Assembly (NCBI GenBank): GCA_965240325.2
Contig: OZ251243.1
Coordinates: forward strand, 682,001 to 746,000
Direction of reading: 5' to 3'
DNA length: 64,000 nucleotides
Origin: Rebecca billardiae RCC1528
Taxonomy: Eukaryota; Protista; Haptophyta
Of the stretch, positions 6,974-44,445 are shown piece after piece. Numbering within the stretch: position 1 is the first letter of the stretch; each line of letters starts with the position of its first letter. A program made the translations under genes and the position numbers. Under the pieces are notes generated by a model, which was not told where the DNA came from, searched no databases, and saw only the letters and a list, made by a program, of their open reading frames with translations.

Positions 6974-7762
6974 CTGCCCGTTCCGCGGCGCAGCACGGCG
7001 TGTGTAGCGATGCGCCGCTCGTCGATGCGGGCGGTGCGCTCCATGTGAATAAGCATCGCGGACACAGCTTCCCAGGAGTCGCATCATCGGGCTAGGCATC
7101 AGGCGAGCGCCGGCCCGGCACGCTCCGCCGCGGTTGCTTTCTTGAACGGGTGTGGCGACGGCTGCGAGCCGCGATCACGGCTTGTACGGGTACCGTACAT
7201 ATTGTCTTATCATCAAACATAGCAGTAAACTGTAGGTACCCACCCGCATCGAATGAAATGGCATGGCCGAACCGAAGTTTTTTTTCAATCATGGACGGGG
7301 GGCACCCACTAAACCATATTTGGCCAGTGGGGTGTAACCGCCGGGCAGCGGCGAAGAAAAACAGCGCGGGAAAATGAAACAAATTCGCTTGAAGCGCGCT
7401 CCGCGCCCTGCCGGCGGCGGGCGGTGGGAGCCGCGCTTGGCGCGAGGCGCTGCGGCTGTCGAGTTGCCGTGCGAAGGCGGCGCGTTGCTTGCGTGGCATC
7501 GGAACGCTTACATGCTCCGCTCTGCGCCCTGCAGCTTGCTCCTTGTCGACTCTGCCGCGCCTACGATCAGCGCGCATGCAAGCGAATCAAGCGTCACCTC
7601 AGAATGAGCTACGCCGGCCTGAGCCTTGCGCGCCTGCCTGGCCCGCGATGCAATCAACTCGGGGCACGAGCTGCGGCTGAGCGAGGAACCAGTACTTGCG
7701 CGCATGGCACGCCGCCTTGAGCCACCGATCGTGCATGTCAATGAGGCTTTGTCAATGAGGCT

Positions 7763-9560
7763 TTAGACGGCGACGAGGCGCGAGAAGACGAGGACGTTGG
7801 CGTAGAAAGCCACAAACTCAAGCACCGGCATCGGCAAGAGCAGGTCCGCCGCGCGCAGGGGCAGGCTCCAGAAGAGGCCGTGGCCGTAGCCGCCGAGCGA
7901 CGGCACACTGGCCCCTTCTTTGGCGGCGTCCGAGTAGAGGATGAACTCGGGCGCGGCAGGCGGCGCGCCGGCCGCAGAGGGCGGCGTAGCGACCGGCGTG
8001 ACAAACAGCATGCCCGCGCGGGCGAGCAGCAGGTCCGCCCACAGGCGGCACGAGCGGAGCAGCATGGGGGTTCGCCGGATCGGCTGCGCGGGGTGCGCGC
8101 TGAGCTCGCCAAAGTTGGCGTACATGCCGTAGAAGTAGGAGCCGTCCGCGGGCGAGAGCGGGCGGCAGTGCTCGAGCAGGCCACACGTGCGCCGGAAGCG
8201 CTCGAAGGGCACGGGCACGCCCGCTAGGACGTCGAGGAGCACGCTGCGGGCGCGGAGGATCTTGTCGGGGGGGATGGCGAGGATGCCGAGGGAGCAGTGA
8301 AACGCCGCGCCGATCCACTGAACCGACAGCCCAAGCTGGCGCAGTGGCGCTTCTCCGGGATGGCCATGATGATGCCGAGGCGCGAGGTGACGCTGTGCCA
8401 GACGAGCAGCAGGCGCACGAGGCGGTCGAGGCCGACGACCGTCCAGCACGGGTCGTCGGTGAACACATGCCCCGAGAACAGGCGCAGCTGCGGCCGGCCC
8501 GTGGCGCGCGCGAGCTCGCTGCGGCGCGCGACCCACGCTCGCTGCGCCGGCGGAACGGCTGGGTCTGCGAGCATCGCCTCAAAGCGCGGCAGCTCCTGCG
8601 CGTCGAACTCGGTGGCGACGATGTGCATCACGGCTGAGCTGAACCGCTGCGCGATGTTGCTGCTCGCGGCGAGGCCGAAGCCAAGGCGGAGCTCGGACAC
8701 GATCGCGAAAAGCGTCGTGAGCGCGTCCGCATCGACACCGTCACGCGGCACCCAGAGAAGGCACGTCTTCCAGAGCTCGGCGGTCGCGAGCGGGAACTGG
8801 TTGAAGAAGTCCTTCATGTCATCGGTCCAGGAGAAGATGGGCAGGCCGAAGACGCGGGCGCCGTCGAGGAGGACGGCGTCGTCGTGCATCTTGTCCGCCG
8901 CCTCAGGCATGATCTCGCACGGCCATTTGCGCTGCGCGCCGCCGCCGAGCGCTGCGGGCGCGGCGGCGCTCGGCGCGCGCGCCGCAGTGAGCGGCGCCAG
9001 AGCGTGAGGCGGCGCCGCCGCGGCGAGCGCGTCGACGGAGTCCGCAGCAGCGGGAGCCTCCACGCCCGGCAGCGCGTCGTGCAGGCCGATCGCCTCGTTG
9101 ATCGGCACGACGCGCTCACCGTCCGTGTCGAGCAACGGCTTTCGCGGCGCGCCGCCGTCGGTGGTGCGCCGGTAGCGGTCCGGCTCGAGTTTGCGCGGCG
9201 TGGAGCCCTGCGGGCCGAGGATGCACGGCATGAACGGGAAGAGGTCGTGAAACTCGTACCAGCCGAGGTCGGAGAGGCGCAGCAGCTCCTTGTGCACCGA
9301 GCGCGCGCCGACGGCCAGCGTGGTGAGGTGGGGCAGCAGCACGAGCTGCAGGCGCAGGTTGGCCTTGAAGCGCACGCAGCTGCGCACGAACTCGAGGAGC
9401 TCCTGGTCGGGCCAGTCCGGCCCCAGCGCGGCAGCGAGGGCGTCGGGGCGCAGGTTGCCAGCCGGGAGGGCAGTCACGTCGAGCGGCTGGAACGCGCCGT
9501 CCACGCGCCGGTGCGCAAGTCCCAGATGACGCCACGCGCGCGCTGCCAGAAGAGCCCTAA
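7763..9560 (-). pseudogene. DIRS-type (tyrosine-recombinase retrotransposon) RT-RNase H fragment
   Basis: RT motifs WTDDMKDFFNQF, LGFGLAASSNIAQRF and VFTDD. A frameshift near 8340 continues as QLGLSVQWIGAAF..FILYSDAAKEG..LEFVA (RNase H N-terminus). Truncated at both ends. Confidence 0.8.
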
Positions 9561-9621
9561 GTCGATCGGCGGCGGGTAGTATCATGGCCACGTACTTCTC
9601 GCCAGCGGACACAATCGTAAT

Positions 9622-12010
9622 TATGGCCCGCGGTGCAGGGCGGAGCGCGTAGCGTAGAGCCCCGCCGGGGGCCCTCACTACGTTGTCAAAAAGATCTTTT
9701 GATCAAAGAAAAGGGGACGGGGGACGATTTTGAGGGGTGTTGGAGGGTGAGTTTTCGCTTTTTCGAGGGGTACGTTGGCCCATAGTGCTCTGCATTAGCA
9801 ACTACGCGCTTGACGAAATAAGCGCGCCCACGCCATTCCGCATAAGTCGATGGACGGACGTGGGATCAGATACCCCGGGGGTGAAACAAGTGAGTATTTT
9901 TGTCCTTCTTGTATGCTGGAGTACGAGTTTGCCGAGCGACGTTTGATTGTTTTGGGTCGAAAACAGCTATGAGGCCAGATTCTTTTGAATAGCGCTTGCG
10001 AAAAGAAGTTACCCGCCTGTCTCGATGGATGAACCGCCTCATGGTATTGAAAGAGATTCTTTTGAATAGCGCTTTTAAACCAAGTTACCCACCTGTCTCG
10101 TTGGATGAACCTCCTCATCATATTGAAGAGATTCTTTTGAATGGCGCTATTTAAAGCCAGTTACCCGCTTGCCTCGATGGATGAACCGCCTTGATAATAT
10201 TGAAAGATATTCTTTTGAATAGCGCTTGTCACAACCAAGTTACCCGCCTGTCAGCTGTCTCGTGCTCGCGAGCGGCGCGACGACATCGGCCCGAGCGAGG
10301 ATGCCGCCTTCAAAGGCGCGCACCGAGTGCGTGCGCGACGGGTGCCGGCCGGCCGCTGGTCTCGACCTATCGCCCTCGGCCCTCCCCGAGCGCGCCTGCA
10401 GGTACCTCCGGACGCGCATTCGGCTTGCTCACTCGATCAGCTCACTCACAGCTGCCGGTCACGCAGCCGCGCGGCGGCCCCGCGACCAGGTCCGCGGCCC
10501 AAAGTGTGTGTGCGCGCCGCGCCGGTGCCCTCGCGCCGGTGGCGTGGGCTGGCTGGCCGCTGGTCTCGCCCACGCGCCCCACTCGCCCCAAGCGCGCAAC
10601 GCCTGCGGGAAGCGCCGGCACCTGCGCGTCGACGCCCGTCCCGCCGCGGCCCGCGCCATCGTCGATCGGACCGCGTGCGTGCGACTCCGTCCGCGCCCGC
10701 GCGCAGGGTGGGAGGGGCTGATGCAGGAGCAGATGCAGGACTACCTCGAAATTGCACGCGACGAGGAGGTGCCCAGCGCGCACTTTACGCTGCGCGCATC
10801 ATCGAGTGGTCGCCCAGCGAGCGCGGCAGCTGGCCACCGGGCCGGCTGACGGCGGGCGCAGCTGCCAGCTGCGGACGCGCAGCGGGCGCGGAGTGGAAGC
10901 CGGCGCAGCGGCCGGGCAGCGGCGGCCGGCGCGGCAGCACGCTCGTATACATCGCGGCAGCTACCGCCGTCGTGCGGGGAAAGCACACGCTCTCGGCGGC
11001 TTCCAAGATGCCGACGGGCCACGGCGTGCACTCCGTGCAGGCTGCGTGCGCACTGCAGTGGCTGTGTCGAGCTGCTGCGGCGTGTGCTCGAGGCGCGGCG
11101 CTCGCACGGGCTACGCGGGCGCAGCGGGTGCGCGCAGCTGGCGCACGCAGTGCCACGTCCTGCGGCGCCAGTTTGGCGGCCGTCCGCCCCCCCGAGCTCG
11201 AGTTCTGCGCGCTTTGCGACGGCGCGGCCGGCAGCGCCCATCTGCCTGCTTGCTTGGGCACGCCAGCATGTCCGCCGCCGGGCCTGCTGCGCGCGCCGAA
11301 GCTGGAGGGCGGAGGAGGGCGCTGGGCTGCTCCTACGGCGTGCTGCAGCCCGGGCAGGCTCTACCGCGGCGCGGCGAGGCCGTCGCGCCTGCTCGCCGCC
11401 GTCGAGTCGCCCGTGCTGCGTGACCCTCGGCCGCACGTGCTCGCTCGGCGGCACCGCAGCACTAGCAGGCGTCCCATACCAGTATACTCGAGCCGCTGTG
11501 CGCACCCAAGGCGCGAGCTGCTCGAGCGGGCCAGGTGGGCCCAGGGGGTGCGTGCAGCTGGCACACGCAGCCCCGGCCCGTGTCATGGGGTGTCGGTTTG
11601 ACGGTCGCCAGCCCCTGTGGGCTCGAGCGCTGTGCGCTTCACCACGGAGGTGCTGGCAAGTGGCAGCGCCCCGCGGCGCGCAACGGCGGGGCAGCATGGC
11701 CGCCGCCGGCGCCGCCGCACATGCCGCCGCTTACGGGCAGTCGAGAGCTTGGGGCAGCACCTACGGCGCATGCTGCAGCTCGGGGCGGGCTCTGCCAGCC
11801 TGTTGTGGCGTGATCGCGCATTTTCCAGACCGTCGACTCGCCCGCGCTGCATAATATTCCATTATTCGTTTGCCGCGCGTGCTCGACGGCGCTCCGCGCT
11901 GCTGCTGCCGCTACGGCCGCGCGTTGGACGGACAGCATATGCCGACGGAGGGTGCACCGCGGGCCCCTAACTACGTTGGTTCTACGGAAGGACCGCGGAA
12001 CGCGGTCATA
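9622..12010 (+). mobile_element. Helentron/HINE-like non-autonomous element, copy E1
   Basis: 5' GGCCCGCGGTGCA (9625-9637), its inverted copy TGCACCGCGGGCC (11953-11965), then a terminal hairpin GACCGCG-GAA-CGCGGTC (11991-12007). The same termini recur at E2 and E3. Confidence 0.7.
9978..10252. repeat. AT-rich minisatellite, ~76-78 bp x ~3.6, inside E1
   Basis: (G/T)ATTCTTTTGAAT(A/G)GCGC recurs at about 9978, 10054, 10130 and 10208, with conserved AGTTACCC..GGATGAACC between. Confidence 0.85.
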
Positions 12011-12097
12011 TTGTGCGCGCATGCCAATATAACACCAGCGCACATGTAAATAAGCTAGACGGCCGCAACGACGGTCGTATATTTATTCGTCATCATG

Positions 12098-12101
<4 letters not shown>

Positions 12102-12136
<35 letters not shown>
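12102..12136. repeat. (CT)n microsatellite
   Basis: Pure TC run between E1 and E2. Confidence 0.95.
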
Positions 12137-12138
<2 letters not shown>

Positions 12139-12166
12139 TCTATATTATTTATTCTAGACTCCGATG

Positions 12167-15474: not shown

Positions 15475-16970
15475 CTCTGCGCAGGCGGGCTCGTCCTTGT
15501 ACCATATTGTACTGCGCCGGCAAGGGCGGTACAGTTTACTATGATTTAACGTGCACACTTGGTTAAGGCGTGATTAACGCAGTAGCGCCGGTCTGTTTTT
15601 CCGCGGGGGGGGCACGCCCGGATTTAACCGTGCCGCCCCCGCGGCTTTGTGCAACATCAAGGAGAGTCCGGACGCTTCTCGTCGCCGCCAAGTGCGGGGA
15701 CCCCTCGCGACGGCCGCGCCGCCGCACCCGAGCGTGCCGACCCGCGCCTCGCGTGCACACGCGCATTTGGCGGGGCGCGCGCGGAGCGCGCCGCGCGCGG
15801 GCGCGTCGGCCCGTACGCTCGGAGCCCTCTTCCGGAAAATTCCGAGCGCGCCGCGCCGCGCCCGTCGCGTCGCGCTGCGGCGTGCGCCGTGCACGCGTTC
15901 AGTTCGGCTCGGGTGCCGCGCGCCGCCGCGGAGCGGAAAGAGAGCCGGGAGCGGGTGCGCTGGCGCGGGCGGGGTGTGGAGGCACGCTACGGGAGTCTAC
16001 TTCTCGTGCCGCGCGCGCGCGCCCGCTCGGCGCCGTCGCTTGGCGCGGCCGTAGGCGTCAAAGCGTCGATGGTTGGCCTCGCTGTCGAGAACCGCGCTAA
16101 AGGGGGGGCCGCCGCCTGGGGGCCGATGCGGGTAAAACGCTTGACGAGACCGAGCACGGTGCTGACGAGACCGAATACGCACCGGCACCGGCCCATGGAA
16201 GCCCGCCGCGCGCTGCGGCCGCGCGCCGCGCGCACATCAGGCGGGGCGCGCACGGAGTCCGCCGCGCGTGGGGGCCTCAGCCAGTACGCTCAGGCCCCCG
16301 GGGGAAGCACATGCGACCTCGCCGCGCCGCGCCCGTCGCGCCGCGCCACGGCGTGAGCAGTGCGTCCCGGTTCGACCAGGGTCGCGGCGCGCGCCGCTGC
16401 GCGCTACCACTGGGGCGGATGGTGCGCACCGCGCGCGCGGGGGCGGCTGGTGGAGGCGGGCGGTGACGGCCTGGCTCGTCTGCCGCGCGCGCGCCGCCCT
16501 GCGTTGCGTCCTGAACTCTCCGTGCTCGCAGGGTGCGGATGCTGCACGAGAGCCAGTGCTGCCGTGACTGTCTGTGACGGGCTGGGCTGGGCTGCTAGGC
16601 GGCTGCGGGCCTCCCGTGTGGGTTGGATGCATGCCCGCTGCGACGCTGGCCGCAGGATTGCGTCCTCCCGCTTTGCCTTGCCCTTGGCAGCTGCGCCACC
16701 GTTGTGTGGCATGTGCTGCCAGGTGCCGCGCTCAGGTGGTCGGGCGGCAGCTGTCTGCCGCCTGCTCGCGCGAGGCTGGCTCCTCGGGCGGCTGGATGAC
16801 CACAATCGCGGATGGCTTGGTGCGGACGGGGTGGTCTTGGTCCCCTGTCTCAGCGCCAGCACGTTGCGGCTGCAGCAGCCGCAGGCGTGTCTGCTTGATC
16901 CGCTTGATGGGCTCCGGCCGGCAGCCCAGACTCCATTTTACCTCTCACATCTGGGCCTTGGGGCAGTGAG

Positions 16971-18030
16971 AGTGCACTCGAGCGAAAACGTGCCAGGCTA
17001 GGCATGCGCGGCCCAGTGCGGGCTAGGCATCGGGGGCGATGCCTAGCCCGGCCAGGCTAGGCATTCGCCCATACCCTCGCGTCGTCAGAACTTTCGGAAA
17101 CGAAAGTCGCGCAAAGCCAAAGGCGGCCCCGGTCTTCTTTCACGGCGGCGCAAGGGGCGCGGGGGCGCTGGCTCGCGATCCGAAGGGCAGTCGCTCGCGA
17201 CCTCGCTTGGGCGGCGGCAGCGGCGCTGCGGCATACTGTTTGCCACCCGCGCGGCTGTGTGCGATCGCGCGGTCCCGTTCGTCGCCACGCCGCGCGCGAC
17301 CGTTCACGGCACAGTCTTTCCGCACTGTGAGCACCCCTTGCCAGCGCACGGCGGCGGAGAGCCCAGACAGCCCGTCACGCGCGCGACGTCCTTGTGGGAT
17401 GCGATGTACTCACCCTAATGCTAGCATGCGCCTGCGTTTTGGTGAGCCTGTTCAGCATCCAGACCACTCTCTACTGCTGCAAGATGAGTCATCGTCTGCC
17501 AATCGGTCAACGAGGCATGGACAGCGCAGCAGTCGTCCATGATCCTCTTGCCCACCCCGTGGGCAAGCGCATGCCTCCGGGAACCCAAAGAACCTGGGTA
17601 CATCGCATCCCACAAGGACGTCGCGCGCGTGACGGGCTGTCTGGGCTCTCCGCCGCCGTGCGCTGGCAAGGGGTGCTCACAGTGCGGAAAGACTGTGCCG
17701 TGAACGGTCGCGCGCGGCGTGGCGACGAACGGGACCGCGCGATCGCACACAGCCGCGCGGGTGGCAAACAGTATGCCGCAGCGCCGCTGCCGCCGCCCAA
17801 GCGAGGTCGCGAGCGACTGCCCTTCGGATCGCGAGCCAGCGCCCCCGCGCCCCTTGCGCCGCCGTGAAAGAAGACCGGGGCCGCCTTTGCGCGACTTTCG
17901 TTTCCGAAAGTTCTGAAGACGCGAGGGTATGGGCGAATGCCTAGCCTGGCCGGGCTAGGCATCGCCCCCGATGCCTAGCCCGCACTGGGCCGCGCATGCC
18001 TAGCCTGGCACGTTTTCGCTCGAGTGCACT
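16971..18030. mobile_element. Foldback element with ~435-bp TIRs and 7-bp TSD
   Basis: 16971-17409 is the near-perfect reverse complement of 17598-18030. CAGTGAG is duplicated at 16964-16970 and 18031-18037. An alternative reading is GAG termini with a 5-bp AGTGA TSD. Confidence 0.9.
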
Positions 18031-18339
18031 CAGTGAGCTGGTGTCAGGTGTGGTGCGATAAACACCGAAGGCTGGTGGCAGCTTACTAATCAGAAGATGG
18101 CTCAAACAACCAGAGGTCACAGCACACCATGCATCGTGCCCGGACCGTGCGCGGTCCGGCAGTGCACAGACTCACAGTGGACCGGATGTTCTTCCGGGTG
18201 AGGCGGCACTCGCCGCCGCAAGGGGAAGCGCATCAGCAGGCGGCTCCGAGTCGCAGCTGCATCGCGTTGCGTTGCCCCCCGGGGGCGCGGCGACGGCCTC
18301 GGCGAGCGTGCCCTTGGGGCCGCAGCTGGGCTCGCACAG

Positions 18340-20780
18340 CGACATGGCCCAGTCCTCGTGGCGCGATGGCCCGCGGGGATAGGGCCTCCCCCGACCGCCG
18401 GCTCTTCGCGGGTCGGCGAGGGTTGCCAACAACCTGCAACCCTGCAACCGAGAAGCGCTCGTTGCATTCCGCGGCGCTGCCGCAGACGGTCGGGGCGAGC
18501 GTGCCCTCGGGGCCGCCGTCGGTGTCTCATGGAGACAGGGTCCAGCCCTCGTGGCTCGATGGCCCGCTGGCGCTCTGGCCTACCTCAGTCGGCCCTTCGG
18601 GAGTCTGTGAGGGTTGCCTGCAACCTGCAACCGGGAAGCTCACGCCGCATATCGCGGTGCTGCAGCGGACGGTTTGGGCGTGTGCGCCCTTGTGGCCGCC
18701 GCCGTTGTCTCATGGAGACAGGGTCCAGCCCTCGTGGCTCGATGGCCCGCTGGTGCTCTGGCCTGCCTCAGTCGGCTCTTCGTGAGTCGGTGAGGGTTGC
18801 CTGCAACCTGCAACCGGGAAGCTCACGCCGCATATCGCGGTGCTGCAGCGGACGGTCTGGGCGTGTGCGCCCTTGTGGCCGCCGCCGTCGTCTCATGGAG
18901 ACAGGGTCCAGCCCTCGTGGCTCGATGGCCCGCTGGTGCTCTGGCCTGCCTCAGTCGGCTCTTCGTGAGTCGGTGAGGGTTGCCTGCAACCTGCAACCGG
19001 GAAGCTCACGCCGCATATCGCGGTGCTGCAGCGGACGGTCTGGGCGTGTGCGCCCTCGTGGCCGCCGCCGTCGTCTCATGGAGACAGGGTCCAGCCCTCG
19101 TGGCTCGATGGCCCGCTGGTGCTCTGGCCTACCTCAGTCGGTCCTTCGTGAGTCGGTGAGGGTTGCCTGCACCTGCAACCGGGAAGCTCACGCAGCATAT
19201 CGCGGTGCTGCAGCGGACGGTTTGGGCGTGTGCGCCCTTGTGGCCGCCGCCGTTGTCTCATGGAGACAGGGTCCAGCCCTCGTGGCTCGATGGCCCGCTG
19301 GTGCTCTGGCCTGCCTCAGTCGGCTCTTCGTGAGTCGGTGAGGGTTGCCTGCAACCTGCAACCGGGAAGCTCACGCCGCATATCGCGGTGCTGCAGCGGA
19401 CGGTCTGGGCGTGTGCGCCCTCGTGGCCGCCGCCGTCGTCTCATGGAGACAGGGTCCAGCCCTCGTGGCTCGATGGCCCGCTGGTGCTCTGGCCTACCTC
19501 AGTCGGTCCTTCGTGAGTCGGTGAGGGTTGCCTGCACCTGCAACCGGGAAGCTCACGCAGCGTACAGCTGTGCTGCAGCGGCCGGTTTGGGTGTGTGTGC
19601 CCTTGTGGCCGCCGCCGTTGTCTCATGGAGACAGGGTCCAGCCCTCGTGGCTCGATGGCTCGCTGGTGCTCTGGCCTGCCTCAGTCGGCTCTTCGTGAGT
19701 CGGTGAGGGTTGCCTGCAACCTGCAACCGGGAAGCTCACGCCGCATATCGCGGTGCTGCAGCGGACGGTTTGGGCGTGTGCGCCCTTGTGGCCGCCGCCG
19801 TTGTCTCATGGAGACAGGGTCCAGCCCTCGTGGCTCGATGGCCCGCTGGTGCTCTGGCCTGCCTCAGTCCCGGGCTCTTCGTGAGTCGGTGAGGGTTGCC
19901 TGCAACCGCCTGCAACCTGGAAGCTCACGCAGCATTACATTGCGGTGCTGAGGCGCGGCGGACGGTCTGGGCGTGTGTGCCCTGGTGGCCGCCGGCGCCG
20001 TTCGGTCTCATGCTGAGACACGCGGGCGGTCCCGGCAGGCCCGTGTGGCTCGATGGCCCGCTGATGCTCGGGCCTACCTCAGTCCCGGGCTCTTCGTAAG
20101 TCGGTGAGGGCGTTGCCTGCAACCGCCTGCAACCCCTGGAAGCTCACGCTAACACGCAGCACATTGCGCGGTGCTGTTCGGCGCGCGGACGGTCTGGGCG
20201 TGTGCGCCCTGGTGGCCACCGCCATCATGTCTCATGGAGACAGGGTCCAGTCATCTTGGCTTGATGGCCCGCTGGTGCTCGGGCCTCCCTCAGTCGGCTC
20301 TTCGTGAGTCGTCGGTGAGGGTTGCCTGCAGCCTTTATACCTCATTCGACCCTTCGTGCGTCTGTGAGGGTTGCATGCCTGCGACTTGCAGCTGAAAAGC
20401 TCGCGCAGCATCACTGCAGCATGCAGCGGTGGCTGCAGCTTACGGTCTGGGCCGATGAGTGTGCCCTCGTGGCAGCTGCGTTGTCTCATGGAGACAGGGC
20501 CCAGCCCTCATGGCTCGATGGCCAGCTGGTGCTCTGGCCTCCCTCAGTCGGCCCTCCGGGAGTCGGTGAGGCTGGCCGAGTGCAGCCTGCAACCAGGACT
20601 GGCTCACGCTGCATACTGAAGCTGGGCTGCAGCGGGCGCGGGTCCGGTCCGAGTGGGCGTGTGCGCCCTCTGGGCAGTTATCTCCTCATGGAGATAGGTT
20701 TCAGCCCTCGTGGCTCGATGGCCAGCTGGTGCTCGGGCCTACCTCACTCGGCTCTTCGTGAGTCGGTGAGGGGTGCCTGC
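18340..20780. repeat. 183-bp tandem satellite, ~13 units
   Basis: TCTCATGGAGACAGGGTCCAGCCCTCGTGG recurs at about 18525, 18708, 18891, 19074, 19256, 19439, 19621 and 19804, then in degenerate units to ~20780. Confidence 0.95.
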
Positions 20781-21859
20781 ATCAAGGCTCGAGCAGTTCG
20801 CGTGCGCTGGACTGACTCGTGCGCACTAGCGGTGGGGCATGCCATTGCGCACACCGGCGGTCAATGGACCGACTCGCCAGCGGGGAGGCAGGACTACTCG
20901 AACAAGGGACTGCCCCCGCTGCCGCAGCCAGTGCCAGCAGTGGCACTGGCAGCGCAGATAGCACCTGATGGTGCTATCTGGCCGGTGATGGCCATCAGGC
21001 GCGCATGCTCCACTGATGCATGCGGCACTGTGCTGCATCATACATACTATGCAGCGAGCAGGCCAGAAGTGGCCGAGCAGACCTCTGCAGTCTCCCTGTG
21101 CGCCATCTGAGGCAGCGATGGGAAGGGATGACGCCGGGTGCGGGCAACCGCAGTGGCCAGGAGGGCAATCAATGGGGCTAGGGCGGCCACACGCCCGCAC
21201 TCACACCCAGCCGACGCGGCTGCTGCCGACAGCGCAGCGCCGGTCGGCAGGATGAATGCGGGCGGAGGGGCCGTCCGTTCCTGGCAATGCCTCATCCCTC
21301 TAATCCCATGCAAGCCTCCGCTTAAGGCGGCAGGCAAGGCATAGGGTCTGCTCATCTCTATTCCATATGCTGATCATCAGCAGTTGGATAAGTGATATGG
21401 TTGATTGGCTGACAGCCACGTCAGCGCCGCCGTTGAGGCCCATTTGAGATGGGCAGCGCAGCTGACTCAGTCAGGGGACCTGGTTGACCCAGATGCCTGA
21501 TTAGTGGTGCGATAAACACCGAAGGCTGGTGGCAGCTTACTAATCAGAAGATGGCTCAAACAACCAGAGGTCACAGCACACCATGCATCGTGCCCGGACC
21601 GTGCGCGGTCCGGCAGTGCACAGACTCACAGTGGACCGGATGTTCTTCCGGGTGAGGCGGCACTCGCCGCCGCAAGGGGAAGCGCATCAGCAGGCGGCTC
21701 CGAGTCGCAGCTGCATCGCGTCCCACCCAACCCACCCTACACAAGGAAGCTGCAGTGCAGTCATATCGTCTACTCATCATTGGACGTGTGATCCCCACCT
21801 GAGTCTGACCCTGCCTTGCGCTTCCCGCGGCCGTCGCCAGCCTTCGGCTTTGCTTCTGC

Positions 21860-22744
21860 TGCACATGGAGGAAGCGGCACCCCACCTTGGGGCAGCTGCC
21901 GCTCCGCTGGAACGAGTGGCACACGCCCGTGACTGGTCGTCTCGGAGCGCTGGCACGAGGGCCGTGTCGTTCACCTCGTCCAGCACCATGTGCTCAGGGA
22001 GCAGGGCACGCGCACTGCTCACGCCCCTCCGGCGATGGCACGGATGCCCCGGCGGCGAGGACGTCCGAGAACTGCGGGAACGGCGGCACTTGGCCGCCGG
22101 AGATCTCTCCGAGTGCCCGGGGAGCTTCTTCGAGGCGTTGAGCGGCCCGGGCAGCAGGACGATCGAGACGGTCTGGTCGTTGACAAGGTGGGCCTCCTGC
22201 CACACGCAGCCTTTGGTCAGCAGCTGCTGGGGCTTCTCGTCCTTCGTGGGCCGCGATGGCTCCCGCCGGAGCCGAGGCGCCTCGTCACGCGGCGGCGGCA
22301 GTGTTGCGGGCGCCAACGTCGGCATGGCGGCGGCGGTGATCGTTGACATCTCCCGCTGCTCCGCCGACCGATCGGCTGATCGTCACTTCGACTTGGCCGT
22401 TGCGGGCGGCCAGCGTCGCGCTCTCGAAGGCGTCCGCCCACGGGCCGTCGCCCGGGGCGGGCGCCGTCCTCAGCGTCTCGATCACCTGGTTCGTCAGGCC
22501 GCGGTCGCTCTCGGCGCCGGCGACCCCGAGCAGCTGCAGCAGGCGGCAGGCCGCGTGCCCGCAGCCCCTGACGGCAGCAGCGCGGCGGGCCGCGCGTGCG
22601 CGACGCACCCGGCGCCGGCTCGGCGCCGGTGGCGTCCAAGGCGAGTTTCACCGCCGCCACCGCGTTCGCGCGAGCGCGCGCCACTGCGGCCGCCAATTCG
22701 TCGGGCGCCAGCGGCGCGTCGGCGGGGTTGGGGACGGCTGCCAT
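21860..22744 (-). pseudogene. Disrupted gag-like ORF with CCCH zinc finger
   Basis: CHSFQRSGSCPKVGCRFLH (C-x8-C-x4-C-x3-H) at ~21870-21925, with Ala-rich frames broken by frameshifts upstream. Confidence 0.45.
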
Positions 22745-22859
22745 CGGGGCGCTCGTTGCGCGGCGGCTGATTTCCCGCCCGCGGCCCCGGCCGCACGGTG
22801 ACCCTGCGCACCCCGGACACCCGGGGTCTTTCGGTCCCGGATCGGCCGTCCGCACATGC

Positions 22860-24610
22860 GGCATGGCGGCCGGTGAGTTCGGCGTCGCAGCGGACGCACA
22901 GCGCCGGGAGGCGGTGCGCGCGCAACGCGACGTTATGCGCCGGCCGCCCGTCCACCAGGCGGCGACGTCGGTCATCCCAGGCCTGGTGGTGGCCACCGCA
23001 TACCAGCGGCCGACGCTCAAGCAGCAGCAGTGGCACTCCCAGGATCGAGGCCGCGTGCCAGATGGAGCACCCCTTCAACGCGCCTGTGCTCGGCCTGGCA
23101 CTCGACATGCGCGCGGCGGCCTCGTGGATCTGTGCACCAAGAGGCACCTCGGTCCACGACGCCCGACTGGCTTGGTTCCACACCGTGAGAGGTGGCGGAC
23201 AGCCTGTCTGGCTGGTCGGCTGAACTGCGTCAGCTCGGACCGGGTTCCATCCGCCGACCCGAGCGGGTCTTCGGAACGCGGAATGGTAAGACCGTCGGCA
23301 AGCCCCATGTGGCTTTCATCTGGTCTGCGGTGTCCAGTGCGTGGGCAATTGCGCGGACAGCGGAGTCTTCCGAGCAGATGCGCAGCACGCCTGCCTCCGC
23401 ATGGCGGACCTGGATCACGCCGGGTGGGATGCGGCGGTGGAGGAGCAACTCCAATCCCAGGCTGCCGGCGCCGCTCACGCAGACGTCCTTGAAGCACTGT
23501 GGGCCCACACCCAGCAGGAGGTGCAGGACTGATGGGCGGCGGAGATCGGCTCGTCGCCAGACGTCGATCGCCTCTTCGGCAGGCACAAGTGGCGTGCCCA
23601 TAATCCGCCGCGGGGTGCCACAAGGCGGCAGGGTCAGCCCATGCGACAACGCCAAGGCCTCCTTGCACAACTCGTGTACAACGTTGCACGAACGGCTTCG
23701 GTGCACCTTGGGCGATTTCCCGGCAGGGGCGGCTGCCCTGTTCAGCGACGTGCTGGGACAGCTGGGCCACTCTGGATGGTCTATGATGCTGGGCATCGAG
23801 GACATGGAAGCAGGGTATCGCCTGATCCAGTGCTCTCAGCCACGATTCACGTTGCTCGCGCACTGGGACCCATTCCGCTGACGTGTGGTGTTCTTTCGCC
23901 TCCAGGGGTCAACTCTGGCCTGAAGAGCGCGGTCATCCAATTCAATCGCCTGGCTGAGTTCGTCACCAGGGTCGCAGTGCTGGCGCTTCCCATCTGTGTG
24001 GGGCACTACTTTGAGTAGGACTTTGCTGTGTGTGAGCCCACCTTTGCGAAAGGAGGGCAGGGGCTGCTGGTGGACCTGGGCCTCCTTATGGGCTTCCAGG
24101 TCAACCAGGCCAAGTCTGGTGAAAACCTTCCTAAGGGTCATACACGACTTCTCTGCTTTTGCTCGCAGCGGCGAGCTCAGGTGCAGCGTGCATGCTGACA
24201 GGATCTCTTTGCTGGTGGATACCATCGAATCCATCCTTGCAGCAGGTTGCATTGCCAAACAGTCGGACATGGGCAGCCTTCTGGGCAAGCTGCAGTGGGC
24301 TTCTTACCGCTTCTGCAGGGCCGCCCTGCAGCCTCTGTTCAGCAGGGCTCTCTCTGGGAAGGATCACTTCCAGCACTAGTCAGGGGCAGTGATGGACTCT
24401 CGCCGATCTATGGCCTCTCTCCTATTCATGGCCGTCATGCTGGGGGCCCTGCGCCCCCGGGTCTTCCGCTTCCGAAAGCACAGGCTCGTCAACACGAGTG
24501 CCTTGGCAGGTCTGCTCACTGGCTACTCTGGTGTGCGCGACTCGGCCCACATTGTGCACTCGTTCTGGGCCTTGGCAGCTGCTTTGCGCTGTGAGGTCTG
24601 GTCGACTATG
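22860..24610 (+). pseudogene. Degenerate DIRS-type RT/RNase H
   Basis: QGGRVSPCDNAKASLHN, GIEDMEAGYR, GLKSAVIQFNRLAEF, GHYFE* (decayed YxDD), SLLGKLQWAS, NTSALAGLLTGYSG..HSFWALAA..CEVW. Multiple stops and frameshifts. Confidence 0.8.
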
Positions 24611-25990
24611 GGCAAGTACATGGTCGCGGCCACGCTGGTGTCTGGGACGCTGCAGCGTGCTGCAGGCCCTCGCCCTGTCACCTGGCAGCCGGCATCAACG
24701 CCAGGCGGGCAGGTGTCAGGGCAGGGCAGGGCTGGCGGCCCGCGGCGTGCCCGGCCTGGCCGGGCACGCCGTCAGCGGATAGGATCCGGCAGGACGTGAG
24801 CTCAGCTCCCTCCTGTCGGCGGCCGTCCGCAGGGCTGCTGGCAGCGGTGCTGGGCCTGTTGAGGGCTGCGGCACCGAGGTCGCCCGCCCGAGGGCGGGCG
24901 ACAGGGGAGGGGCTAGGGCGGCCACACGCCCGCACTCACACCCAGCCGACGCGGCTGCTGCCGACAGCGCAGCGCCGGTCGGCAGGATGAATGCGGGCGG
25001 AGGGGCCGTCCGTTCCTGGCAATGCCTCATCCCTCTAATCCCATGCAAGCCTCCGCTTAAGGCGGCAGGCAAGGCATAGGGTCTGCTCATCTCTATTCCA
25101 TATGCTGATCATCAGCAGTTGGATAAGTGATATGGTTGATTGGCTGACAGCCACGTCAGCGCCGCCGTTGAGGCCCATTTGAGATGGGCAGCGCAGCTGA
25201 CTCAGTCAGGGGACCTGGTTGACCCAGATGCCTGATTAGTGACGCCGGGCATCAAGTCTGAATCGGCAGGGAGGCGGAGGGAGCGCACCACGTGAATTAA
25301 CGTGCGACTCGTGCGACAGGTGCCTGGTGACGTCTCGCCGTATGGCCACTTGTGGGCCAACCGGCCAGTGCACGGCGCTGTTGGCTCGCTCGCACTGCGT
25401 CTGCGGCGCCTGGCCAGCACCAGGACGCGTTCGTAAGATTCGTATAGTTTACCGCGGATCGTGTCGGACGTCACAGCCGATTGATGCGCGTCAGTCAGGT
25501 TAGCCAGCACGAGCACAGCCAGGGGGAAGCTATGCCGGAACCAAGTCGTGCTGCACAGGTGGCGCCACACCGCACACGAGGACTCGCCGGCTGCGGGCTG
25601 GTCACTCCATCACTCGCACGGGCCACACCTCCGACCTCGACTGTCTCCTATGCTGGAAGCAGAGATCGTCGTCTAGAATGTGACGAGGGAACCTTGCGGG
25701 ATGGTCACGGCGCTGGATGGACAGAGGGAGCGCTGCTGAGTGCTGGCGAGGACATCGTTTGCGCAGCACGGCCGGACGGCCGCGGACCATTTCTTCTTTA
25801 CGGTTATGTGGCGGTGTAACCTGTCCTGCCGGTGCCGCTGCTCCCCGTCCTTGCGACGGGTGCGCAAGGGCCCTTGGTCTTGGTCCGGGTGACCACAAGC
25901 CTCCCTTGGCAGTGGGGTGGGTGGGTAGCCGGGCGGGCGGCCCCAACGGCTCCGAGCTCAAGGCTCCCGCGCGTCGTCGGCACTGTGGAG

Positions 25991-28381: not shown

Positions 28382-29677
28382 TATGGCCCGCGGTGCAGGG
28401 CGGAGCGCGCAGCGTGGAGCCCGCACCAGCGGGCCCGAACCACGTTTCAAAAAGATCTTTGATCGTCAAGAAAAAAGGGACGGGGGGCGGCGGAAAAAAA
28501 GGGACGGGGGGCGATTTTTAGGGCTGGCGGAGACCGAGTTTCGAGTTTTTGAGATCGCATAGAGAGGTCTATTAGGCCGAAAAAGAGCGCGCCCAGCTGA
28601 TTCCATAAGTAATCGATGGACGGGACGTGAGCCTGGCCGTGACATTAGTGTAACGGTTCGTTACGAGCGAATCGTACTCGTCTTCCCGGATCGCGTGACG
28701 TCCGGACTGGGCCACATCCGGATCGTCGGAGGTGACGTGCCCCGGCACGATGGGCGATGGCGGATATGCGGGACGGCGCCTGCACGTGCCTCCGGACCCG
28801 CCTCCCGCTTGCTGCTCACGCAGTCAGCTGCGACCGTGGCGCATGATCGCAGAAGCAGTGCCGGCAGTACGGCCTGCATCAGCTAGTGCCGCGCCGTCGT
28901 GGCGCGCGCGGTACGGTTGCGCGTTTGCAGCGCTCGCCGGCTCGGCGACGGCACGCGCGTGCGGCTCAGGTGTGTCAAATGCGGTCTCGTCGGCGCGCTT
29001 TCGCCTGCCACCTCGTGCACCCGTGCCGCCAGTTTCATCGTCTTCATGAGGACTGCTGCTGCTGTCGCCATCCGCTCTCCATCACCCCGAGTCGCCGGTC
29101 GCGCGGCGCGCGCGGTAGGCACTAGGCAGGGCGTACGGTCACTCACCCGTGCAACGGGTCAAGTGGCCAGAGTACGTCTGGTCGTTGGCTGGCACGGGCC
29201 GCAGCGCTAAAGCACCCTGCTGTCACACCCGACTCCTTCAGTACTCCGAGCTCCGCGGCACGACTCACTCGGCACGATCGCGGACGGGTCGGATCCGAGC
29301 TGATCAGCCAGAGTTGGACACAGTTTGGCAGCTACTAGTAGTAATTCCGATGCCGATGGCACGATCGCGGACGGGTCGGATCCGAGCTGATCAGCCAGTT
29401 GGACATTTGGCAGCTAGTTGTCAGACGGACGTCCGATTTGACGACCGGTGCCGGGTGCGGTCTCAGGTCCGCTGCTGTGATTGTGTGAAGTGTGAATGAG
29501 TCTCGCGGTCGCGCAGGCAGGGCGACGGTCGGACTAGTAATAGCTTATATTCAGTCATCTCAGAACCGACTTCAACTGGCGAACTGCAACTACGGCGGAG
29601 AGCCGCGATTGCACGGCCACCGCGGGCCCCCAACTGCGTTGATTCTATGCAGAAAAGGACCGCGGAACGCGGTCATA
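28382..29677 (+). mobile_element. Helentron/HINE-like non-autonomous element, copy E3
   Basis: 5' GGCCCGCGGTGCA (28385-28397) with a nearby inverted copy GCACCAGCGGGCCC. 3' TGCAC[GGC]CACCGCGGGCC at ~29610-29628. Hairpin at 29658-29674. Confidence 0.7.
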
Positions 29678-29846: not shown

Positions 29847-32479
29847 CACAGTGCCGGAAAACTGCTCAGGGTGACGTTTTAAGTTGTCCGCACCACTAGT
29901 CGAATCATCGGACAATTCTGAAGCGGTGCGCCTAAATTCGGCGCACCATAGGCGCGTCGAATCGTGGCACAGACCTTGGTAGCAGGCCACACCTGAGCGC
30001 GCTGCGCGCGCCGACGCGCGCTCGGCGCGGGCAAAAAATCATGCGCCGTTGGCATTACGCAGCCCCGCGCAGCGCTGTGCTCGAGCTCGGCGGCGGCGAA
30101 AGCGGGCGGGCGCACACGGCGGTGCCCGTGCGCGCTGCTCCGAGCGCAGCTGCGGCCACCCCGGCGGCATACCGCCGGTCGAGGGCACGAAAACCGATTT
30201 TTCGGGAAAATGCAGAGCAGCGGCGCCCGAGCGCGCCCGAGCTCGTCGCAGCACAGTCTCCTGGTGGCTGCGCCCCGTGAAGCCACGCCACGCGGGGCGC
30301 TGGCGTGCGCGTGGCCTGCGCCCACCGTGCGCTGCCCGATCATGGCCGTCGACCGCTCCGAGCGCCTCACCACGCGTGCTCGAGCCCACCGATACTGACG
30401 CCCGAGCACGGTGCCGGCAGCGCTCGCAGGTGGGCGTCGGAGAAAACACGCCGGCCGAACGAGCTTGAAGCGTCCGCCGCGATGCCAACGGCAGCGGACG
30501 ACGTGCGCACCACCTCGGCGCCAGTCGCCCAGCCCTTGCGCGGCGGTGCGGGCTCGCTCGTTCGCCGCCATCAGCTGCGCGCGCGCAGCCCGATCACTGC
30601 CCGCTGGTTCTGTTGTCGAGCAGCTGCGGCCTGCCACGCGCACTGCCGGACATTGAGCCACAGCGCGAGCACGCGCCTCGTCTGGCACGCGCGAGCACTC
30701 AGCATCGTGCGTGGCCACCATGACGCGCCCATCTGCGCCAGCAGCGATGAGCACGCCGCCGTTCAGCTCGCATCGGGCTCGCTCGCGACGCAGCAACGCG
30801 CGGCCGTAGCGGCAGCAGCGGCGCCGTCGAGCACGCGCAGCAAACAAATATGCAGCGCGGGCGAGTCGACGGTCTGGAAAATGCGCGATCACGCCACAGC
30901 AGGCTGGCAGAGCCCGCCCGAGCTGCAGCATGCCGTAGGTGCTGCCCCAAGCTCTCGACTGCCCGTAAGCGGCGGCATGTGCGGCGGCGCCGGCGGCGGC
31001 CATGCTGCCACGCCGTTGCGCGCCGCGGGGCGCCGTCGGCACCTCTGTGGTGAAGCGCACAGAGCTCGAGCCCACGGGGGCTGGCGACCGTCAAACCGAC
31101 ACCCCATGACGCGGGGCTGCGTGCGCCAGCTGCGCGCACTCCGTGGGCCCACCTAGCCCGCTCGAGCAGCTCGCCTTGGGTGCGCGCAGCGGCTCGAGCA
31201 CACTGGTATGGGACGCCTGCCTGCGGTGCCGCCGAGCACATGCGGCCGACGGTCACTCAGCACGGGCGACTCGACGGCGGCGAGCAGGCGCGACGGCCTC
31301 GCCGCGCCGCGGAAAAGCCTGCCCGGGCTGCAGCACGCCGTAGGAGCAGCCCAGCGCCCTCCTCCGCCCTCCAGCTTCGGCGCGCGCAGCAGGCCCGGCG
31401 GCGGCCATGCTGGCGTGCCCAAGCATGAAGATGGGCGCGGCCGGCCGCGCCGTCGCAAAGCGCGCAGAACTCGAGCTCGGGGGGGCGGACGGCCGCCAAA
31501 CTGGCGCGGCAGGACGTGGCACTGCGTGCGCCAGCTACGCGCACCCGCTGCGCCCGCGTGGCCCGTGCGAGCGCCGCGCCTCGAGCACACGCAGCTGCTC
31601 GACACAGCCACGGCAGTGTGGCTTGTGCGCGTGCACGTGATCAGTCTCAGCTCTGAGGCGCGCGCTCAGGAGGGCTGCGGCCGGGCCGAGCGCGATCTGC
31701 GCGGACGGTACAGCCTGGCGGCTCATGCCAGCCAGCCCAAAGCCCGCTCCGCCATCCGCGTCATGGCGCTCCAGCCTCTCGCGTGCTGCGCTGCAGCCGC
31801 GCTCGGCAAAGACGTCGCCCAGCCCGCCTTGCACGCGGCTGAGCAGTGGCAGCCAGGCGAAGCGTCGTCGCGGGCGAGGCTGCGCTGGGTGATGCGGCTC
31901 GGGTCGGTGGGCAAGTCGCACCCCGCCGTCGGTCGCCTCCACGCCTCAGGCTCGCTCGAGGTCAAAGACAACTGCGCGGCGCGGCGTTTGCGCGGGCGGG
32001 CCGCGGGCGTGGCGGGGTGTACGCGTGCAATGTCACAGCCTCCCACACAATTTCAGGAGGGTGAGACGCACCGCCAGCGGCACCCGCACACAATCCCACC
32101 CTGCGCGAGCCACCTGCCGTGTCGACTGAAGCATCAGGCTCGGGCGCAACCGCGGGCGGTGCATGCAAGAAGCTCGCGAAACGCACCGCGCGCGCCGTGA
32201 GGGCGAAAGGAGAGCACCCGTCAGGGCGGCGAGGAACTTGCCCAGCGCCACGCGGAAGACGACCCCAGCCCGCGTCGACGCATAGTCGGGCCCGCGAGCA
32301 GCCTCGTCGGTCTTCGCCGAGTAGATCGCGCCGCGAGCCGAGGCACCGCTCGTTTGAGGCTCCGTCCGCCGCGAAGTCGCGGCTTCCACCCGAGTTCCAC
32401 TGTCCGGCCGAGACCGGATTCGCTGACTCGAGCTGCGGACCGTCCGAAGCGTCACGGAAAATTCCAATCCTGCACTGTG
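29847..32479. mobile_element. Non-autonomous TIR element with CACAGTGC termini and 2-bp (TA) flanks; CMC/EnSpm-like
   Basis: TA|CACAGTGCCGGA..GTGACG on the left and CGTCAC..TCCTGCACTGTG|TA on the right; no transposase recognised. Confidence 0.55.
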
Positions 32480-39450: not shown

Positions 39451-40065
39451 GGTCCCGCGCGGCATGTGGGCGGCGAGCAGCGGCGCACCTAATGTGGCCA
39501 GCGAGCGCGAGCAGCACGCCCGCGCGCTTGGCTGCGCGCACGCACTCCGTGAACGACCTGAGAGGCGCCCGCAGCATACGGCGAGGCGCGGTGCATCGCG
39601 GCGGGTCTCAAGTCAATCAATCCTATCGATCTATCACAGTATTCTGATTGGTGGCGTGCCGCGCACCTGCTGGCCGGAGGCACCCCCGTTGCACCGGACA
39701 GGCGGCGGGCAGTGCAAGCTCTGACCTCACTCCTCAGAGTCCGCCCGAGTCCGATGAGCGATGGTCCGCTGATCTGTGATCACTACTGATTATAATATTA
39801 TAATATAGAATACGATCATATTGGCATTACCGCATTACGGCCCGGCGTCTAAACACTAAACAGTCTGATCGGGATTCGGCGGTCCCGCGAGGCCCGCACC
39901 GTAGGCGTAGCCGGCCCCCCGGGCGTAGCCGTACGGGCGACCACTTAGCACTGATGACCAGGCCCGGCGGGGAGGCCGGGCAGACCGTCTGACTATCAAT
40001 GTGACAATATGATAAATTGATAATCATCCAATCCGGAGCCGCGGTCAACAGACCCAGCAGCAGCA

Positions 40066-41051
40066 GGCTCTGGCGGTCACTGTCCGGGACGTCCAGCAGG
40101 GGTGCATTTAACCATTTGGGGGGGTCTGGGGGGGGGGCTCCCCCCAGCCCATCGAAGGACCAAATACGCCTCAATAGGGGCCCAACTCGCCAGATTTGCA
40201 TGGGCGCAGACTGCCGCAAATGCTGCGCTGAGCCTGAGGGCCGGAGCCGTGCAGCGGCGTCGATTGACAGCGTCAGCTGTGCGCCGCCTCGCGACGACCA
40301 TGCGACGCCTCGCACAAAGCCCTGATCTCGGCGTCTCCCTCGCTAGTCAAGACGTAGCGTAGTGCTGGATCGAGCGACGCATTGACCGCCGCCGCGGCCG
40401 CCGCACCTCGGCGCGCTCGCGAACTCGCTGAGCCGTCAGCCAAGCGCGAGCTCGTGCGCACGCCCGCGCCTCCGCGAGCTGACGGCACGGCCCGGGGCGC
40501 GAGCAGCTCGACGCCGACAGCGCGCAGCTCGCTCGAGTTGACGCGCAGCTTCTCGCCCGGCGGCGACTCCCAGTGGCGGCAACCATCGGACGTGCTTCGG
40601 GCAACGGCAATCCGTATGGCCAGGGCAAGCCAGGGTCACCGTGTACCTGCGCTCGTTGGGAGATGCGCGCGCATTGTCCCACCCACGCGAGCGCGTCAGC
40701 GAGCCCGTCGTCATCGGATGGTCCTCTATCTGCTTGGCCAGCTGACGTCTCCGCGCGCCGGGCGCGGCTGCGACATCACCCGACATGGCCGCAGCTCACC
40801 GTTGGAGTCCGGGAACTTGAAAAAAAAAGTTCAGCACGATGGAGTCCTCCGTGTTCGACGTGACGACGCCTTCGAACACGTCGAGGCGTGAGAAGACGTC
40901 GATTACTTCGATGAGGACTACGTTACAGTACTTCGTCCGCCGCCCCGGAGATCTTTCGATTGGTACCCTCATCGCTCCCTGGCTCCCAGGGGTTCGACTA
41001 AATGCACCCCCCCCATAGGGTCAGTGGACGTCCCTGACTGTGGCTGGAGCC
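40066..41051 (+). mobile_element. ~0.98-kb non-autonomous TIR element, copy 1, 4-bp TSD AGCA
   Basis: Imperfect TIR GGCTC..CAC.GTC.GGGACGTCCA plus inner GGGGTGCATTTA; AGCA at 40062-65 and 41052-55. Confidence 0.85.
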
Positions 41052-42253: not shown

Positions 42254-43063
42254 TCAACGAAGCGCGCTCCGCGCTGCCTCTGCGGCGTCGCGCAGGATCT
42301 TCCTGCGCTCGTTCGGGTCCGGGGTGTAGTGGTACCGTGCCTGCAAATCGCCATAGCGATGCTCTGCGCCGAGGGTGAAGAGATCCGTGACTCGTAGCAG
42401 GCCGTCCCAACTCTCCTGCTCTGGGCAGCTGCCCCACTTCGACATCACTTGCTGCTGACCCTCAGCGACTGCGCGCAGCTCCTCCTCAGGGCACGGGCAC
42501 GCCGGCTCAGCAGGCGGGTGCGCGGGCTTGAGAGCGGCCCATTGGATGTCCGGGAAGACGAGAACGGCACGGAATGCGAACCAAGGCCCGTAGGTTGGGT
42601 GCAGGCTGAACTTGCTGTGCTCCGCGTCGTAGTACGCCATGCCGCATAGGTGGCCCACTGTGTGCACCGAGCAGCAGCGGCCATGAGACTCCACTGTCTC
42701 AAAGGCGTACACGACTTCGCAGCGAGAGGAAGGGGCGACGACCTGGAGCGCTCCCTCGATCACTTGCTTCGTGTACTCATCGAGCGGGTCCGCGTGCTCG
42801 ATCACGGCCGATCCCTCCGGTGTGGACAGGTGCATCGCAAACGCATCCCACATGGCCCGAGTGTTCCCGATAACGACTGCGAGGGCGTCGTCATTGCCGC
42901 CTGGCAAGCGCAGCTCGGGCTTGTCGGCGATCTGATGGAAGCGGTTGTAGTCCCCCACGCAAAGAATCGCCGAAAGGTCGAAGCCGCGCTGCGTGCAATG
43001 CTGCGTGAGCTTGCTCACCATGCCCTCTGTCCAGTCACGGCCCCCCTCGTCGTTCGCCGCCAT
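42254..43063 (-). CDS. MMACHC: MMACHC/CblC-like cobalamin-processing protein
   Basis: LAVVIGNTRAMW, DPLDEY, GHLCGMAYY, SLHPTYGPWFAFRAVLVF and terminal YGDLQARYHY motifs typical of the family; intronless. Confidence 0.85.
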   Translation of the reverse strand: MAANDEGGRDWTEGMVSKLTQHCTQRGFDLSAILCVGDYNRFHQIADKPELRLPGGNDDALAVVIGNTRAMWDAFAMHLSTPEGSAVIEHADPLDEYTKQVIEGALQVVAPSSRCEVVYAFETVESHGRCCSVHTVGHLCGMAYYDAEHSKFSLHPTYGPWFAFRAVLVFPDIQWAALKPAHPPAEPACPCPEEELRAVAEGQQQVMSKWGSCPEQESWDGLLRVTDLFTLGAEHRYGDLQARYHYTPDPNERRKILRDAAEAARSALR

Positions 43064-43106
43064 CGTGCTGGCTCAGACTCATTCTACTACTATGATTTAA
43101 CGACTA

Positions 43107-43580
43107 CAGTTTGCTATGATTTAACGTGCACACTTGGTTAAGGCGTGATTGACGCCATCCAACACTGCACAAAGACACCGCCACAAAACAAGTAAGAATA
43201 CTGAGGGCCAGGCCTTCTGTGTGATAAGCTACCCCAGTCATGCCGCTTGATACACGCCTTCCCCAACCGACAGTGGTCAGGGCTCCACGTTCCATACTAC
43301 TACATCCTGTCCGCGTGCTGTTGCATCGGCGCCCGGTCGGCGAGTTCGGACGACGACGTTTTGTGGACGACGGTGGGGCGAGGACGACGGGCGCTGGCGC
43401 GCCGCGAGGCGGCCGCAGCCCTCATTGACGGGCCTCATCCAGGCCTCGCAGGCGGACGGCTGAACGAATTTTCCGGCGGCGCAGCCATCGGCGACGGCTT
43501 CATGGGCGGTGACAGTTTGAGTTGGCGGGCGTCGATCTCGCCTGCCTGAGCTGTGTGCGTCTCTTATTCTTAGTAAACTG
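43107..43580. mobile_element. TA-flanked MITE with CAGTTT(A/G)CTA termini (Tc1/mariner-like)
   Basis: TA|CAGTTTGCTATG on the left and CTTAGTAAACTG|TA on the right. Further copies of the right end start at 43650 (inverted, ~180 bp) and 44026. Confidence 0.65.
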
Positions 43581-44445
43581 TAAGAGACGCACACAGCTTT
43601 ATATGATAGGCAGGCGACAGTCGGACTGAACTTGGTCGATTGCCCGGTACAGTTTACGACTAAGAAGGTCAGAAGGAATAAGAGACGCACACAGCTCAGG
43701 CAGGCGAGTCCGAGATTGACGCCCGCCAACTGTCACCGCCCATGAAGCCGTCGCCGATGGTAGCGCCGTCGGAAGATTCATATTTCATTCAGCCGCCCGC
43801 CTGCGAGGCCTGGATGAGGGCTGCGGCCGCCTCACCCGCATAGATACGGTGTACTCATTTGATGATTTAACGCCGACACAGGTCCTGACTCCCTCACACG
43901 CAGGTAGGACGGCGCATCAGGATTCAGGCGGTCCGTCCCGCCAGCCCCGGTGATTACTGATTTATTGTCGTCGCGGTAAGCTAGTGCCCGATCGTCGACA
44001 CGAAGACTGTAGTACACTAGCAGTACAGTTTATACTAAGAATAAGAGACGCACACAGCTCAGGCAGGCGAGACCCTCACTATCATACCGATTGCCATTTA
44101 TGAAGTATTATATATATATTCATAATCACAGTCACAGAACACCGTACTTCACTCGTAAATCAATATGCTCCATACCGCCTATAGTTACAGTACTCACTCA
44201 GTAGCCTGCTGGCCTACTGGCACTGCCCGTTATAACTCAAATTGCAGCAGTCAGCGGTACCGACTTAGACCGTAAGTCTAAGACTACCGAGTCCGGGAAC
44301 GGTATAATACTAATAGTGATGTGTATATCAATATTACATATATAGTTATTGATATATATATATATATATAATACCTTGTCACGGACGCGGGCGTGTAGCG
44401 CCCGGTGTTGCCGAGTCGGCCGGGGCTACTACTCACAGTCTAGTA

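Follow-up and report, generated by a model that had tools for sequence, protein, structure and literature searches.

Abundant small insertions with complementary junction bases in repeats of the haptophyte Rebecca billardiae: candidate excision scars of several kinds of transposons

Which process has written the many insertions of a few bases that distinguish sister copies of repeats in the alga Rebecca billardiae RCC1528 (Haptophyta)? The question is raised by a stretch of 64,000 nucleotides (positions 682,001 to 746,000 of contig OZ251243.1, assembly GCA_965240325.2; the window in the following), in which an earlier note had pointed to micro-insertions of the form NN-x-NN, that is a two-base duplication around a middle base complementary to its neighbor, and had ascribed them to the coming and going of transposons. 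The window lies on contig 26 of a 72-Mb assembly with 41 contigs, has a composition of 58–80% G + C and contains microsatellites and numerous repeats; an Rfam search of it yielded no match. In the aligned repeats the small insertions are about as frequent as substitutions, their junctions follow complement rules, and these rules change with the length of the insertion. As best single reading we lean, without great firmness, toward excision scars left by several kinds of transposons.

Sister pairs and the gaps between them were listed from a comparison of the window with itself, and all statistics were obtained from 305 kb, consisting of the window and 60 loci with overlaps merged. For the repeat family termed A, 30 genomic loci were retrieved and 12 full copies aligned, while a consensus of 35 copies served as reference for family B. 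Insertions and deletions (indels) were polarized by majority across the aligned copies and then re-placed against the consensus, which resulted in 119 clean small insertions. An ancestral site is written p D n and the derived one p D F D n, with D being the duplicated bases and F the filler.

Counted over the young copies of three families, private mutations comprise 164 substitutions, 148 small insertions and only 11 small deletions. Family B accounts for 86, 100 and 5 of these, respectively (one divergent copy left out), family A for 58, 33 and 3, and five young copies of family A2 for 20, 15 and 3; in the divergent B-like copy, several gaps scored as "deletions" more plausibly reflect insertions gained by the B lineage. 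In these young repeats insertions thus equal substitutions and exceed deletions by more than ten times. In almost every genome investigated so far, small deletions are commoner than insertions, and the frequency of indels is several-fold below that of substitutions. Some of the insertions are common to two to eight copies, which indicates that they were inherited. In older lineages, among family A2 and divergent copies (L023, L024), the ratio of insertions to substitutions is only about 0.2 (10:46 in two old A2 copies), and deletions are as numerous as insertions. This may mean that the process began recently or else that the lineages of master copies are constrained.

All nine strings cited in the earlier note are present where it had placed them (Table 1), and in all cases with many sister copies for comparison the additional bases represent derived insertions and not deletions in a sister. 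The family-A copy at 40066–41051 carries five of them (+CGG, +GG, +CG, +CAT, and +TACAG), none of which has a counterpart in 11 other copies, these being the inverted sister at 44446–45416 and 10 further genomic copies. The NN-x-NN form holds for the events at 40074, 40774, 28461, 19905, 7220, and 43654, but not for the one at 20308, which is a plain duplication. The change of TA to TACAGTA at 40924 is indeed a canonical scar of the Tc1/Sleeping-Beauty type. The insertion at 28461–28467 is followed by a duplication of 24 bp with a 7-base filler. The scar at 11460–11465 is inherited through transposition. At the very spot of this scar one locus of the family-B alignment (L053, C10:2161115...) contains a 418-bp insertion with a short terminal A run, which may be a retroposon resembling a short interspersed nuclear element. 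The satellite in which two of the cited events lie belongs to a 7-kb repeat at 18292–25241 with at least four near-full genomic copies; it comprises 13 units of 183 bp, and the repeat has direct terminal repeats of 333 bp (21174–21506 and 24909–25241).

The complement rule proved to be non-random. In the largest class of +3 events, which are three-base insertions with a 2-bp D (ab-x-ab), x is complementary to an adjacent base in all nine clean cases (expected 4.0–4.3; P = 2e-4 to 8e-4), and reading the unfiltered list by eye gave 13 of 13 +3 events with a 2-bp duplication. The form noticed earlier is therefore real, yet it is only one subclass, as the commoner rule is that both junction bases are flipped, at T = 2 and 6–9, where T is the number of bases between the two cuts of a staggered break. 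For two-base fillers the rule is F = comp(n)comp(p), and it is satisfied by both bases in 18 of 38 fillers (4.2–5.4 expected) and by at least one base in 37 of 38 (21–23 expected; P about 1e-8). When the corresponding 76 junction positions are compared with a perfect duplication, 55 hold the complement, 16 the other transversion and 5 a transition (binomial P = 4e-12). In each of the five one-flipped +6 events the flip is accompanied by a base complementary to the final base of D, so that a palindrome centered on the flip arises, and two 3-base fillers likewise carry palindromic additions centered on the complement. One-base fillers with L of at least 6 have p = n in six of six cases, with x being their complement in five of the six, as would be expected if two overhangs of one nucleotide anneal. 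A model in which hairpins close one base off the end fits 26 of the 38 two-base fillers (7.4 by chance). Altogether 76 of the 119 insertions have the D-F-D structure, which corresponds to an excision footprint of the hAT type with both copies of the target duplication kept, and the junctions bear a mark of the type left by hairpin-capped ends. CAG recurs as filler, in three of five undirected +3 events; these three lack a second TA.

Several simpler rules were tried on the same junctions. That x is a transition of the base of a perfect duplication fits four of nine events, which is the chance level, and the transition rule fits none of the two-base fillers; duplication followed by point mutation is rejected, with transitions making up merely 5 of the 76 junction changes. 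Hairpins flanking a blunt break, which would give the swapped order comp(p)comp(n), account for just 5 of 38. Slippage, which presupposes a unit present in two or more repeats beforehand, was also discarded, since most events lack a prior repeat (only 6 microsatellite and 13 homopolymer events among the 119).

The length spectrum of the clean insertions is uneven. Lengths from 1 to 9 bp are represented by 13, 37, 21, 16, 3, 11, 9, 3, and 2 events, respectively, with a dip at +5 (3 of 119), and the junctions change along this series. De novo +4 insertions are mostly perfect duplications (nine, with two altered), none of the 19 insertions of +6 to +9 is perfect (P = 4e-6), and among 32 of +2 only three are perfect and 29 altered. 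Events with both bases flipped imply T = 2 in ten cases, T = 7 in five, and T = 8 and T = 9 in one each. This shift of junction chemistry with length suggests several enzymes rather than one generic process, and together with the complement rule it favors break ends of the hairpin type.

For bulk DNA, the earlier note had proposed that the stuttering intergenic sequence was built in this way, but ab-x-ab with a complementary x shows no specific excess in the window as a whole, nor in any of three GC classes (low, mid, and high) after removal of perfect 3-bp tandems. An apparent excess in AT-rich DNA was due to these tandems and vanished with them.

We infer from these regularities that the insertions would be heritable scars of staggered double-strand breaks that were rejoined with almost no loss, each scar duplicating the T bases that had lain between the two cuts. 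At T = 2 and T = 6–9 each copy would have its junction base turned into the complement (the last one on the left, the first one on the right), sometimes with one palindromic base added, as might happen if each broken end had formed a hairpin whose closure lay one nucleotide off the duplex end and which was subsequently opened. hAT transposases treat flanking DNA in this manner. The hAT enzyme Hermes reportedly nicks one nucleotide into the flank (Zhou et al. 2004), which would explain the flip. NN-x-NN would then be the case of T = 2 with one palindromic base, the clean +4 duplications would correspond to what is expected from blunt flanks, and TA-CAG-TA would be the Tc1-type scar. The most likely source would be excision of numerous young cut-and-paste transposons with target duplications of 2, 4, 5, and 7 bp.

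Candidate donors of such kinds reside in the window (Table 1). Family A has at least 80 genomic matches, and its 4-bp target duplication was read in 11 of 11 copies; a nested 1.1-kb element also has a 4-bp target duplication. Family D is represented by at least 39 copies of 96–99% identity. For family C, 56 exact 5′ ends were found in the genome; 15 of them are preceded by TA, and 13 of these 15 copies also have TA after the 3′ end, which indicates a 2-bp target duplication. The presence of at least 56 near-identical copies implies that family C was active very recently. No Pfam domain was found in its open reading frames (ORFs). A stretch of 825 bp in family C (30794–31618) is 90% like a part of family B (11051–11926). 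Family B is considered Helitron-like, as it lacks a target duplication and has a GAA-loop hairpin near its 3′ end. In the window copy (9623–12009) and the 30 loci L031–L060 its insertion sites are AT-rich, and its end consists of the hairpin CCGCG-GAA-CGCGG followed by TCAT. Both donor kinds named in the earlier note, the CAC-ended element at 29847–32479 and the miniature inverted-repeat transposable element (MITE) with TA followed by CAG at its ends, do occur in the window, but the target preference of the former does not match the scars.

Table 1. Small insertions and resident repeat elements in the window (TIR, terminal inverted repeat).
Feature	Position	Strand	Remark
+3 insertion GG-C-GG (TGG to TGGCGG)	40074..40076	+	private to one of 12 full family-A copies
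+2 insertion GG within G run	40136..40137	+	private; homopolymer slippage or assembly noise, outside signature
+2 insertion CG between T and G	40587..40588	+	private; first base is complement of right neighbor; one-flipped class
+3 insertion CA-T-CA	40774..40776	+	private to one of 12 full family-A copies
+5 insertion, TA to TA-CAG-TA	40924..40928	+	private to one of 12; canonical Tc1/mariner-type scar
+3 insertion TC-G-TC in family-B 5′ fragment	28461..28467	+	insertion vs. 35-copy consensus
+3 insertion CC-G-CC in two 183-bp satellite units (second at 20122)	19905..19910	+	insertion vs. sister units
GTC-GTC, simple tandem duplication of 3 bp within a single satellite unit	20308..20313	+	insertion vs. 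sister units
+3 insertion AG-C-AG in MITE terminal-repeat copy	7220..7225	+	insertion vs. copy at 43569-43582
+3 insertion AC-G-AC in another copy of the same MITE terminal repeat	43654..43660	+	insertion vs. 43569-43582
13-bp insertion, 6-bp duplication plus 7-base filler, in one arm of palindromic element	43420..43438	+	
+7 insertion, 5-bp duplication, 2-base filler, one base flipped	11654..11660	+	private to window family-B copy
+6 insertion, flipped base plus one palindromic base	11460..11465	+	common to 8 family-B copies; Ac/Ds-type scar
Family A, 1-kb TIR element	40066..41051	+	4-bp target duplication (AGCA)
Family A, second copy, inverted	44446..45416	-	without the five insertions
Family B, 2.4-kb element	9623..12009	+	main source of polarized events; no target duplication, GAA-loop hairpin near 3′ end
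Family C, 2.6-kb element, ends CACAGTG...CACTGTG	29847..32479	+	2-bp target duplication (TA); copies 99-100% identical
Family D, inverted ends TAGCCTGG...	61426..63367	+	7-bp target duplication at 61419-61425 and 63368-63374
Palindromic MITE	16970..18031	.	5-bp target duplication AGTGA
MITE-like unit, ends TA then CAGTTT...	43105..43582	.	ends at 43105 and 43582 read TA then CAGTTTAC; candidate donor kind for TA-CAG-TA scars

Several observations weigh against excision scars. The data stem from only three repeat families in 305 kb, and the donors are candidates that no filled/empty pair links to a particular scar. The scars of +2 and +3 lie between C and G, C and A, T and G, or A and G and never at TA, whereas family C prefers TA (5′ flanks TA 15, CA 5, TG 4, and CG 0 of 56); due to this mismatch of target spectra, family C was rejected as the source of 2-bp scars. 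Across the genome, six-frame Pfam searches revealed one broken hAT domain (PF05699) and two MULE domains but no CACTA, P, or hAT RNase-H (PF14372) domains, the method being weak for genes split by introns, and little emerged when the long ORFs of the window were scanned for transposases with Pfam models. The stagger implied by the scars is predominantly 7 or 2 bp, while hAT duplications measure 8 bp. Approximately 30% of the insertions fall outside every rule (CG in non-matching contexts, and long fillers accompanied by duplications of up to 24 bp). Hot spots are only marginal (P = 0.05), and the numbers of private insertions and substitutions per copy are weakly correlated (rho 0.15 and 0.41).

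Part of these points would suit host repair in the absence of any transposon, with nicks or staggered breaks being filled in and joined to give short tandem duplications of any length, unusually strongly in this genome. Most events are duplications after all, some of them (20 and 24 bp) far exceed any target duplication, different lengths recur at the marginal hot spots just mentioned, and genes for transposases of the hairpin type are scarce; moreover, one study attributes small tandem duplications at breaks to fill-in by polymerase (Pol) alpha-primase (PMC8355091). Nevertheless, fill-in predicts neither the complement flips (55 of 76, P = 4e-12) nor palindromes centered on them, nor does it foresee perfect +4 next to never-perfect +6 to +9 insertions (P = 4e-6), the +5 dip or the recurrent CAG filler. 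Fill-in and end-joining would lead to perfect or randomly altered junctions and a smooth length spectrum, and neither was observed. We regard host repair as a possible but rather unlikely origin. More doubtful still is a host or domesticated nuclease that forms hairpins, breaks the genome widely and would have produced most +2 and +3 scars in place of the resident transposons, raising insertions to the rate of point mutations.

Copying errors during transposition of the repeats, by rolling-circle or gap-repair synthesis, would be born with each copy and would not be genome-wide. The weak correlation per copy points in this direction, as does the lower ratio of insertions to substitutions in divergent lineages (10:46 in the two old A2 copies). 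However, one Helitron-like family, two TIR families, one satellite and MITE ends all show the same classes of insertions, and the symmetry of the flips at both sides points to two break ends and not to one polymerase, which makes this origin improbable. Assembly or sequencing artefacts could account for insertions in homopolymers (13 of 119), of which +GG at 40136 is an example. As general explanation they are hardly credible, because the events are structured insertions of 2–11 bp with sequence rules and because several of them, being common to two to eight copies, are inherited. Excision scars stay the preferred origin. What was observed are the insertions with their polarity and excess, the complement rules, the changes with length and the target duplications of the candidate donors, whereas the involvement of hairpins and the assignment of scars to particular families are inferred.

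Two further regions of the window touch none of these questions. Positions 1–7100 consist of approximately 7 kb with 73–80% G + C and a period of 9, 12, or 15 bases (GCC/GCG-rich); this periodic DNA lies on opposite strands at either side of a gap of 100 N at 4327–4426 and is probably a pair of huge Gly/Ala/Pro-rich repeat genes or a collapsed repeat. Long (TGAA)n and (AT)n microsatellites at 49783–49970 and 56640–56700 were found as well, adjacent to each other.

About half of the insertions carry the chemical signature of hairpin-capped ends. Should they stem from excision, the mobility of transposons would be a mutational force of the first rank that steadily lengthens the DNA of a free-living alga, and past transposition would be recorded even at places that no longer contain an element. 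Otherwise, another hairpin-forming break activity would be at work.

A comparison with known systems reveals likenesses of different degree. A patch-mediated model in rice reportedly derives small tandem duplications from filled-in breaks. Duplications of this origin are known also from PMC8355091; like the +4 class described here they arise de novo, comprise few bases and need no prior repeats, but flipped junction bases are not predicted for them. Also in rice, scars of transposon excision are known across the genome, and excision is regarded there as giving rise to small insertions and fillers (PMC5023962, PMC4423477). Those scars lie at known polymorphic elements and are mostly deletions or fillers, whereas in R. 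billardiae insertions equal substitutions and follow the complement rule. The Tc1/mariner footprint TA-C(A/T)G-TA is matched exactly at 40924, and MITE ends with TA followed by CAG are present in the window; still, this is the single full example, the three further CAG fillers having no second TA.

Regarding V(D)J recombination and Transib elements, ab-b′-ab corresponds to a duplication with one palindromic (P) nucleotide, and the CACAGTG ends of family C are identical to the heptamer of the V(D)J recombination signal. Differences are that family C has target duplications of 2 bp and not of 5 bp and that its preference for TA mismatches the scars. In junction structure the scars resemble those of the hAT element Ac/Ds, in which the target duplication persists at either side, the complement stands in for the base adjacent to the break, palindromic additions are centered there and one base of microhomology is used (PMC5873905). 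Unlike Ac/Ds, the genome investigated here gives almost no signal of hAT transposases, and its scars were read from alignments of repeat copies and not from known excision sites. In the same way as Ac/Ds scars, they nonetheless retain the duplication, flip to the complement (55 of 76), carry palindromic additions and exhibit one-base microhomology.

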